Below, piece after piece: positions 61,156 through 64,000 of a DNA stretch of 64,000 nt. Numbering within the stretch: position 1 is the stretch's first letter; every line of letters starts with the position of its first letter. Both the position numbers and the translations under genes were made by a program. Source of the stretch: Utricularia gibba (lineage: Eukaryota; Plantae; Magnoliophyta); contig NEEC01000011.1 of the NCBI GenBank assembly GCA_002189035.1, forward strand, positions 2,976,001 to 3,040,000, given 5' to 3'. A model generated the notes under the pieces. The model was given only the letters and a program-made list of their open reading frames with translations, was not told the DNA's origin and made no database searches.

Positions 61156-64000
61156 TTACCCGGCTGGGGTGGTGGTGGTTGGGACCGGCTTGTACGGTCG
61201 ATCAAGAGTCATGGAAGCCCCTGCGTGAAGAAGACGCCTTCCTATCGAACCCACTTGGGCTGCGGCTACGGCTGCGATGGTTTGCAGACCAACCCGAGGC
61301 TCTGGGGGGCTTCGGCTACGGCTGCGGCTTCGGGCACTGCTCCTTCCACCGTTTGCCATGCTGCTGTCGTGAAAGCTCTTGTAAGGTGCCGCTCCAAAGC
61401 TGTTGGGAGTGTGTCCATTTGCGACAGGGCCGCCGTACCTGTAAGAAAAGAACCAAAGGGGAAAAAAACAGCATCGCTCTCTGCTATCCGGTGACAAACA
61501 ACGAATGCTATGGCGGATGTAGGAATCCAAGAGAGGAATACCTGTCCACACGATGGTCCCGGTCGAAACCACCTCTCCCTGTGTTTCTTCCAGGTCCGCC
61601 ACGGCCTCTATCACCTGAGCCCCATTGACGTCTCGACCTGTTCATTCCACCTCCTCGTGAAGCCAGCTCACGAAGTGGAGCAGGAATGCTTTGATTAGCT
61701 CCTTCTAATACTTTAATGAGATCCGACGCATGCTTTGCGTCCTGGTCACCGAAGAAGGTGTAGGCTAGACCTGTTGCGCCAGCCCGGCCCGTTCTCCCAA
61801 TTCTGTGAACGTAGTCCTCAACGCCGGTTGGAAAGTCGTAGTTTATGACAACCCTGAGTTTAGACATATCAGCAAGAGAATTGACATATGGATCTCTCGT
61901 AATTCTGGGAAGAAAGAGAAACTAGTCACCTTATGTCCTTGATGTCCAAACCACGAGCGGCAACATCGGTGGCTACAAGTATTGGGGACCTTCCACTGCG
62001 AAACTGATTCAGCACATGATCCCTCTCGCCTTGAGATTTGTCTCCATGAATAGCAACAGCTCCAAACTGTCTGGATAAGATGCCGGCAAGTTGATCACAC
62101 ATTTTCTTTGTTGAGCAGAAAATTATGATCTTCGATCCTGGCTCTTGAGATCTCAAAATCTGTTCCAGCCGCCGGCGCTTGTCCATCTGTGGCAGGACTT
62201 CAACATACTGCAGCATAACATTACTTTATCAGCTGGTAGGCTTGCAAAATATTAAGGAAGCAAGAGGGCACCAGCCCAAGTATACCTGTGTTATCGCCTT
62301 GTTTGCAACAAGCTCATCCGCATTTCCTATGTTCACCTGTACAGGGTTACTCAATAAATCGGCAGCAATTTTCCGCACCTCCTTTGGCCATGTTGCAGTA
62401 TACATCAGTGTCTGTCTACGAGAAGGAACTTCCTTCACAATTTTCCTAATCTGAGGTTCAAATCCCATGTCCAGCATCCTGTCAGCCTCATCTAGCACCA
62501 AATACGACACCTGATGGAGGCTAATTCTTCTCATCTCTAGTATATCATTCAAGCGACCAGGAGTAGCCACAACAATATCCACACCTCTGTCAATGTCTCT
62601 CAATTGAGGGCCCTTTGGCGCCCCACCATACACGCACTGCACATCACAGAGATCAAAGTGTTAGATTAAACAAAAAACAAGATCATGCAAACAATAGCGG
62701 TTCAAAATATTTAAAAGCACTTTCCAAAGATGAACAATGAATGAACGCGACCTAGTCGCTGTTTATGAAAAAAAACTGAATCATTTAAGAACCATGTGAT
62801 AAAATCTACAAGTCAAGAAACGTTATGAAATGAAAAAACAAAAAAACAAAAATCCTCTTTTTCAGTGCGGCAGATTTGTTGACACGGTGAGGAAAACGAA
62901 CACTTTTCCAAGATCTTGGCACTATAATTGCACATTACAATAAGCGGAAGAAAAGAAACATCTTACAGTGCAAGAAATCCTAGACGATCTTCCAAACTTG
63001 ACCGTCTCATCTTGTATTTGGGTGGCCAACTCTCTAGTAGGAGATAGCACCAAAACTGTTGGACCTAGTCTTGGATTATTACCCCTTTGCTTCAGATGAA
63101 TAAATCCAGGAATTAAGTAACCCAACGTTTTTCCGGACCCTGTCTTTGCAATTGCAACAATATCACGTCCTCTCATAGCTATTGGCCATGACTGCGCCTG
63201 GATAGGGGTGGGAGTAGAAAAACCGGCATGATAAACCTGCAGAATGCAACAAAACGAACAACTATATGAGAACACCTGGCTTCAGTAAGCCACTTTCTTT
63301 GGCACAAGGCATGTGGGCACGGAAAAAAAAAGAACAATTATCCCATAAAGAAGTTAGACAATAGTTGCTGGAGAAAGCAACCAATAGTAGGAGGGCGCAT
63401 CTTCTATCTGGACCAAGGGGCCAACGGAATCGGCACCAGCAGCAGTCCCAGTCAAGCTTGGTTGATTCGGTAAGCCCCTCATATAATAGGTCCATCAATA
63501 GGCACTCCACTTACATGCAAGCACAGCGTACGACATTTGCCTCCCGAAGCAAATATCGCACCTGCGACCAAAAGTACAGATGGAAAAAGATTGTCCATGA
63601 GTTTCATGATCCCAACAGGGAGGCTCTAGAGGCATTTGAGAACCATGAAGTCCATTTGACATCAACTCAAACTTACAAAGGTTTTTTTACTTTGAGATTC
63701 ACTTCACAGAAGTTAGTCAGTACCTCTCTCAATATCTCTTGAGAAAAACCAGTGGCTTCAAATGAGGTAAACGGCAGGGGCACATTATCTCCCTGTCCAC
63801 AAAAGGAATAAAGCACCGTTAGAAATCAGTATCCACGCAAAAATAAGAGATAAAAAAATAATATGCAGTACAAAACCAGATACGACAAGCTGCTAAGGGC
63901 AAAATCCATATTTGCATGATAAGTTATCAAGCTGCTAAGGGCACATGAAAACATAGTATTCTAGCATACTAAATACGCAAGGAAGTGTATAAATCATGCA
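61156..64000 (-). CDS. DRH1: DEAD-box RNA helicase RH14/RH46 (DRH1; DDX5/Dbp2 family), 5'-truncated by the window edge
   Basis: [10 protein letters not shown] (Q motif), [61 protein letters not shown] and an RGG/RS tail. Last visible exon is 63724-63792. Confidence 0.96.
63416..63479 (-). other. Intronic imperfect RNA hairpin downstream of the candidate poison exon
   Basis: Minus-strand arms AGGGGC/GCCCCU, CCGAAUC/GAUUCCG (one mismatch) and ACCA-AGC/GCUGGU around a roughly 15-nt loop. Confidence 0.55.
63515..63561 (-). other. Candidate 47-nt frameshifting (poison) cassette exon in the RH14 intron
   Basis: Acceptor ttttggtcgcag| (63564-63562) and consensus donor |gtaagt (63514). Inclusion gives a TAG at 63181-63179. 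Confidence 0.6.

Follow-up and report, generated by a model that had tools for sequence, protein, structure and literature searches.

A copy of the land-plant DEAD motif in the long intron of a DRH1/RH14-type helicase gene of Utricularia gibba

The splicing of a DEAD-box helicase gene was analysed in the window, that is the whole stretch of 64,000 nucleotides of Utricularia gibba DNA under study. A DRH1/RH14-type helicase gene of the window very probably has the DEAD motif switch of land plants in working form. A 47-nt segment of its 487-nt intron, which the first-pass annotation had proposed as a poison exon, is essentially this published motif. The alternative isoform observed in RNA is an alternative-3'-splice-site form (alt3) keeping 325 nt of the intron. 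The earlier interpretation is partly supported, being right in principle and wrong in isoform.

The helicase gene and its long intron

The minus strand is the strand of the RH14/DRH1-type DEAD-box helicase gene, as revealed by direct reading of the sequence. The exons were searched singly and the joined frames were translated locally. The part of the gene considered here is as follows.

63724-63792, minus strand: upstream coding exon of 69 nt (23 codons), ending ...EILRE in phase 0
63237-63723, minus strand: switch-bearing intron, GT..AG, phase 0, 487 nt, whose full removal gives the coding mRNA
62967-63236, minus strand: downstream coding exon of 270 nt (90 codons), with the Q motif and motif I GSGKT

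The RNA data comprised four public runs (X1, X2, X5 and X6) of the same organism from three studies, and the spliced contigs were placed on 61000-64000. This evidence consists of assembled contigs and not of reads, hence the levels are uncertain and rare variants are dropped. The contigs span the upstream exon over 63722-63792 and join onward, and this 23-aa exon was recovered in eight orthologues by tblastn. The downstream exon is also covered by RNA contigs and showed 80-91% identity to the orthologue exons. The Pfam DEAD/DEAH helicase domain was matched by the downstream exon (E 2.2e-19) and by the next exon (E 1.5e-24). The downstream exon led to a full-length relative, the plant orthologues listed with this relative bear the names RH14, RH46 or DB10, and the tail of the helicase is RGG/RG-rich with repeats present. 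GT..AG introns of 103, 76, 78, 330 and 487 nt were seen in all four runs, with the exception of X6, which has no contig across the 76-nt intron. Of the five introns for which this gene has RNA support in the window, that of 487 nt is the longest; the first-pass annotation had called it much longer than most introns in the window. The coordinates given there for the intron (63723-63237), the CAG (63564-63562), the segment (63561-63515), the GTAAGT (63514-63509) and the TAG (63181-63179) were all correct.

The comparison of the window with the RNA also revealed a few differences of sequence. All four runs have an extra base in the C6 run of the last coding exon at 61304-61309 on the minus strand (a G behind 61303 on the plus strand). 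At the window length of this run the helicase frame leaves the RS-rich tail and continues to a later stop, and at the RNA length it stops near 61206; the assembly probably has a homopolymer error at this place. X5 and X6 have an additional T behind 61134 in the 3' UTR, and X5 has single-base differences at 61141, 61164, 62070, 62076, 63003, 63005 and 63458, which look like strain or allele variation. Next to the 3' end of the helicase on its downstream side, at 59560-60990, there is a putative further gene with several exon-like blocks, apparently plus-strand. A CTT/GAA repeat is present in this neighbouring region near 59600-59620.

The hairpin and the buried splice site

The secondary structure of the intron around the proposed poison exon was then considered with the following features.

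63522-63566, minus strand: DEAD-motif hairpin, its 20-bp stem interrupted by one bulge and closed by a 4-nt loop (MFE and consensus fold, covariance model)
63562-63564, minus strand: alternative 3' splice site CAG, with RNA joints; in the alternative form the exon begins at 63561
63515-63561, minus strand: candidate cassette of 47 nt, almost wholly the DEAD hairpin
63509-63514, minus strand: GTAAGT, the proposed donor, a consensus-like 5' splice site with no RNA joint in the four runs
63179-63181, minus strand: TAG ending the frame upon inclusion of the 47 nt (local translation)

The fold of the 91 nt from 63590 to 63500 had an MFE of -35.1 kcal/mol compared to -23.1 +/- 2.9 kcal/mol for the shuffles (z -4.1). 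In the MFE structure and in the consensus fold the alternative AG is paired in the base of the stem, A63563 with U63525 and G63562 with C63526, and G63527 is bulged opposite. The DEAD motif is defined by a stem of 19-20 bp with a terminal loop of 3-5 nt, and the hairpin of the window has 20 bp and 4 nt. It also has the AG within the stem base, the G paired to C and the bulged nucleotide opposite, and the gene whose long intron holds it is a DEAD-box helicase gene of the DRH1/RH14/RH46 type. RNA of X1 and X2 shows use of the internal AG, and the product has a premature stop, TAA 63513-63511. A covariance model (R1) was built here from eight other eudicots with the window left out. It matched 63573-63517 on the minus strand with 63.2 bits and E 7.6e-17, which is the sole strong match in the 64-kb window; the other match (E 0.037) falls on the opposite strand at the same site. 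The first-pass annotation had drawn a weak local hairpin at the donor. This competes with the much stronger 20-bp hairpin 63566-63522, the key element of the intron, which had been missed.

The mechanism proposed for this intron follows the Arabidopsis orthologues. In the pre-mRNA, the 20-bp hairpin 63566-63522 has the alternative 3' splice site AG 63563-63562 buried at its base. With the hairpin closed, the whole 487-nt intron would be removed and the helicase made. With the hairpin opened, presumably by the activity of the helicase itself as in Arabidopsis, the spliceosome would take the internal AG. The alt3 transcript formed in this way retains 63561-63237, ends its frame at TAA 63513-63511 and is unable to encode the helicase. 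It should be an NMD target, because spliced junctions lie downstream of this TAA, and the Arabidopsis experiments point to the same fate. The expected outcome, again on the strength of those experiments, would be a negative feedback on the helicase level. By orthology with Arabidopsis, the hairpin opening by the helicase, the NMD of the product and the feedback are thus expected in Utricularia gibba as well. Unproductive-splicing feedback of an RH14/DRH1 gene in this very intron, as the first-pass annotation had suggested, fits the experiments on the Arabidopsis orthologue, and in the window the acceptor is used and leads to a premature stop.

Splice joints, orthologous introns and rival readings

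The joints across the intron were analysed in the RNA contigs. The alternative splicing gives three further features.

63562-63723, minus strand: upstream sub-intron of 162 nt, removed if splicing goes to the alternative 3' splice site (joints in X1 and X2)
63237-63561, minus strand: part of 325 nt kept in the alt3 isoform (X1 record 4, X2 record 9, X5 record 14)
63511-63513, minus strand: in-frame TAA ending the alt3 frame 17 codons past the joint, inside the GTAAGT (local translation)

The coding joint, with 487 nt skipped, was present in all four runs and hence in all three studies. The alternative joint 63724>63561, with 162 nt skipped, lies within a 381-nt contig of X1 (mapped 63559/63722, cut +2). 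This contig runs unbroken from 63209 in the downstream exon to 63559 and then jumps to the upstream exon at 63722. X2 has this junction in two loose ends: behind 63563 follow the letters with which the upstream exon ends, and before 63722 stand those with which the segment starts. Both runs with the alt3 joint, X1 and X2, belong to a single study. The retained part is also covered by contigs of X2 (63209-63539) and X5 (63379-63563), and no alt3 contig was found in X6. Contig depth, which is a poor measure, hinted at similar levels of alt3 and the coding junction in X1 and X2 and at about one eighth in X5, with alt3 absent from X6. Full retention of the intron was not assembled, the upstream 162 nt having no contig in any of the four runs. 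The context of the alternative acceptor is U-rich, with ...UCUUUUUCCAUCUGUACUUUUGGUCGCAG directly before the G and the CAG at 63564-63562.

Orthologous introns were collected from eight eudicot loci, namely Sesamum, Handroanthus, Nicotiana, Coffea, Chenopodium, Prunus, Macadamia and Macleaya. The loci were taken via the proteins of annotated genomes, and intron-less transcript contigs were set aside. The intron has the same position and phase in all eight and a length of 491-553 nt; the closest to that of the window is the Sesamum intron with 68.5% identity, which puts the plant near Lamiales. In the alignment, ...UUGUCGCAG before the splice site and GUGCGAUAUUUGCUCC...AAUGUCGUACGCUGUGC behind it are almost invariant and common to the window. 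The CAG with its following G and the hairpin behind it are invariant in the eight other eudicots, and the AG is invariant in the nine-species alignment. The nine-species consensus fold has 20 pairs, almost all of them kept, with the AG paired. The pairs of the lower stem are all standard in the window, which departs only at the apex, where 4 nt are missing; a stretch of about 18 nt, next to the stem on its downstream side in the other eudicots, is deleted as well. On account of these two changes its behaviour could differ in detail from that in the other eudicots. Compensatory changes were seen at none of the 20 stem pairs among the nine species; since these sequences are too alike for such changes, the structural support comes from the published covariation and mutant data.

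The acceptor at 63564-63562 is more than chance, because the RNA contigs join 63724 to 63561 and the CAG, the following G and the hairpin are invariant in the eight eudicots. The donor GTAAGT at 63514 is not more than chance, because this word occurs twice in the intron, has no counterpart in the eight species and has no RNA joint. The two checks which the first-pass annotation had proposed, junctions in RNA and conservation of the orthologous intron, gave a divided result: they upheld the acceptor and not the donor. The 47-nt cassette is unsupported. What survives of the poison-exon model is the used acceptor and the unproductive product, and the only isoform seen is alt3.

A further alternative would make the Utricularia intron a sharper, lineage-specific version of the known switch. 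Opening of the hairpin would expose acceptor and donor together and give a 47-nt micro-exon, its product perhaps being degraded too fast to appear in contigs; this is a doubtful reading. On this reading, a deletion after the hairpin together with point changes would have brought the perfect GTAAGT to a distance of 8 nt from the stem. In the alignment, CAUGUAAGUGGAGUGCC of the window corresponds to CAUGUAUUUGGAGCGCC of Sesamum, CAUGUAUUUGGAGUGCC of Nicotiana and CAUUUAAUUUGGAGCGCC of Prunus, and a GTRAG just behind the hairpin is found in none of the eight other eudicots, leaving the window the only one among the nine.

It is unlikely that the 47-nt poison exon 63561-63515, with its CAG acceptor and GTAAGT donor, is the main unproductive product. 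Its inclusion does shift the frame to the TAG 63181-63179 as had been claimed, its acceptor is used in RNA and its donor is a perfect GTAAGT at +1 to +6. An efficiently degraded NMD target or a rare product could also escape the contigs. The joint 63515>63236 is nevertheless absent from the contigs of all four runs. The X1 unitig is unbroken across the donor over 63209-63559, and an appreciable branch would have split this unitig. The donor has no counterpart in the eight other eudicots. Cassette variants that start at this acceptor have been described for DRH1 and RH46 of Arabidopsis and for poplar, soybean, tomato and moss; those published for moss, poplar, soybean and tomato measure about 200-250 nt as counted by eye and use other donors (PMC12218528).

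The alt3 RNA as a mere splicing intermediate or noise is a very improbable reading. It supposes that the 162 nt go first and the rest later, for example by recursive splicing from the regenerated GAG/GUGCGA, with no regulatory meaning. Joining of ...GAG to GUGCGA does recreate a site starting with GU, and no full-retention contig was seen, so that on this reading the upstream part would always be removed first or fastest; the word 'recursive' is absent from the 2026 preprint (10.64898/2026.01.23.701338). Against it, the Arabidopsis alt3 accumulates in NMD mutants, the reporter protein falls as alt3 rises and stem mutants shift the ratio. Recursive splicing in particular is given low odds because Chenopodium has AUGCGA at the would-be regenerated donor, which cannot serve as one, yet the motif is kept there. 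The AG and its pairing partner are deeply conserved, which further argues for selection on splice-site choice.

That the conserved intron serves another product (snoRNA, miRNA or small RNA) with incidental splice-site use is scarcely credible, for although conservation in eudicots extends over about 200 nt past the hairpin on its downstream side and the G+C of the 487-nt intron exceeds that of the neighbouring introns, no Rfam 15 family matched 59000-64000 at E up to 1, the helices predicted in the downstream block are almost without compensatory change and the hairpin is accounted for by the published experiments.

The DEAD motif switch is the preferred reading, and its intron showed further features outside the hairpin.

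63330-63508, minus strand: conserved non-coding block downstream of the hairpin, within the part kept in alt3, with many invariant columns in the nine eudicots
63671-63676, minus strand: second GTAAGT of the 487-nt intron, at intron position 48

The conservation downstream of the hairpin is strong, reaching over about 180-200 nt and into basal eudicots, and the published motif comprises the hairpin only. A GC-rich hairpin at 63416-63479 falls within the conserved block 63330-63508. A second structure downstream of the hairpin was tried; its consensus fold of 41 pairs had three compensatory changes only and no structure is claimed. The candidate helix GAAUCAUC/GAUGAUUC was rejected, being broken in Lamiales, Prunus and Macadamia without compensation. 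A GTAAGT-like site lies 40-70 nt into the intron in six of the nine species (window 48, Sesamum GTGAGT 62, Chenopodium 40, Prunus 67, Macadamia GTAAGC 64, Macleaya 70) and also in the published poplar sequence. This early site could be a conserved decoy or an alternative 5' splice site; no RNA joint from the early GTAAGT of the window (63676-63671) was present in the four runs.

Comparison with known systems

The DEAD motif has been described in 115-123 land-plant species, among them in DRH1/RH14 and RH46 of Arabidopsis (Sack et al. 2025, RNA Biol, PMC12218528). Its stem contains an alternative 3' site, and the alt3 product, which has a premature stop, accumulates in NMD mutants (PMC12218528). 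Four isoforms are reported: besides the coding form there are alt3, intron retention and a cassette exon (Burgardt et al. 2026, bioRxiv 10.64898/2026.01.23.701338). The same study elucidated that DRH1 shifts its own reporter to the non-coding forms, for which helicase activity is needed, that disruption of the lower stem raises alt3 and compensatory mutations restore the pattern, and that the RGG/RG tail contributes to specificity (10.64898/2026.01.23.701338). Helicase dependence and NMD are established in Arabidopsis and N. benthamiana assays (PMC12218528; 10.64898/2026.01.23.701338). The authors describe the motif as specific to plants and lacking in algae (10.64898/2026.01.23.701338).

Splicing-based autoregulation via this element is thus already known, and the window holds an ordinary copy of the published switch. 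The switch is a way for the cell to measure RNA-unwinding activity and keep its level steady, as worked out already for Arabidopsis. The window adds that the element and its use are kept in Utricularia gibba. It adds further that the intron, being conserved for the most part, has stayed near the length of 491-553 nt found in the eight other eudicots, and that the regulatory logic can be rediscovered from sequence alone.

The gene belongs to the same family as DRH1/RH14 and RH46, and it is the same intron as that of the published DEAD motif, because the sequences of the flanking exons and of the motif match the published variants. The motif is near-identical in sequence (GUGCGAUAUUUGC...AUGUCGUACGCUGUG) and shares the 20-bp stem, the AG at the base paired to C and the bulge opposite, as well as the alt3 isoform with a premature stop and the RGG/RG-rich helicase tail. 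The window differs from the motif elsewhere in an apex shorter by 4 nt and a deletion of about 18 nt directly after the stem, and it is alone, compared with the eight species examined, in having a consensus GTAAGT, which lies 8 nt past the stem. A similar case is that of yeast Dbp2 and animal DDX5/DDX17, DDX5-family helicases which limit their own expression through their own intron. The 45ABC motif of the RBP45 genes, GRP7/GRP8, PTB2 and the TPP riboswitch of THIC share with the DEAD motif a conserved intronic element that coincides in part with an alternative splice site and sends splicing towards transcripts containing a stop (PMC12218528; 10.64898/2026.01.23.701338). These systems have other sensors and belong to other gene families, their signal being protein or metabolite binding, whereas the signal of the DEAD motif is unwinding activity.
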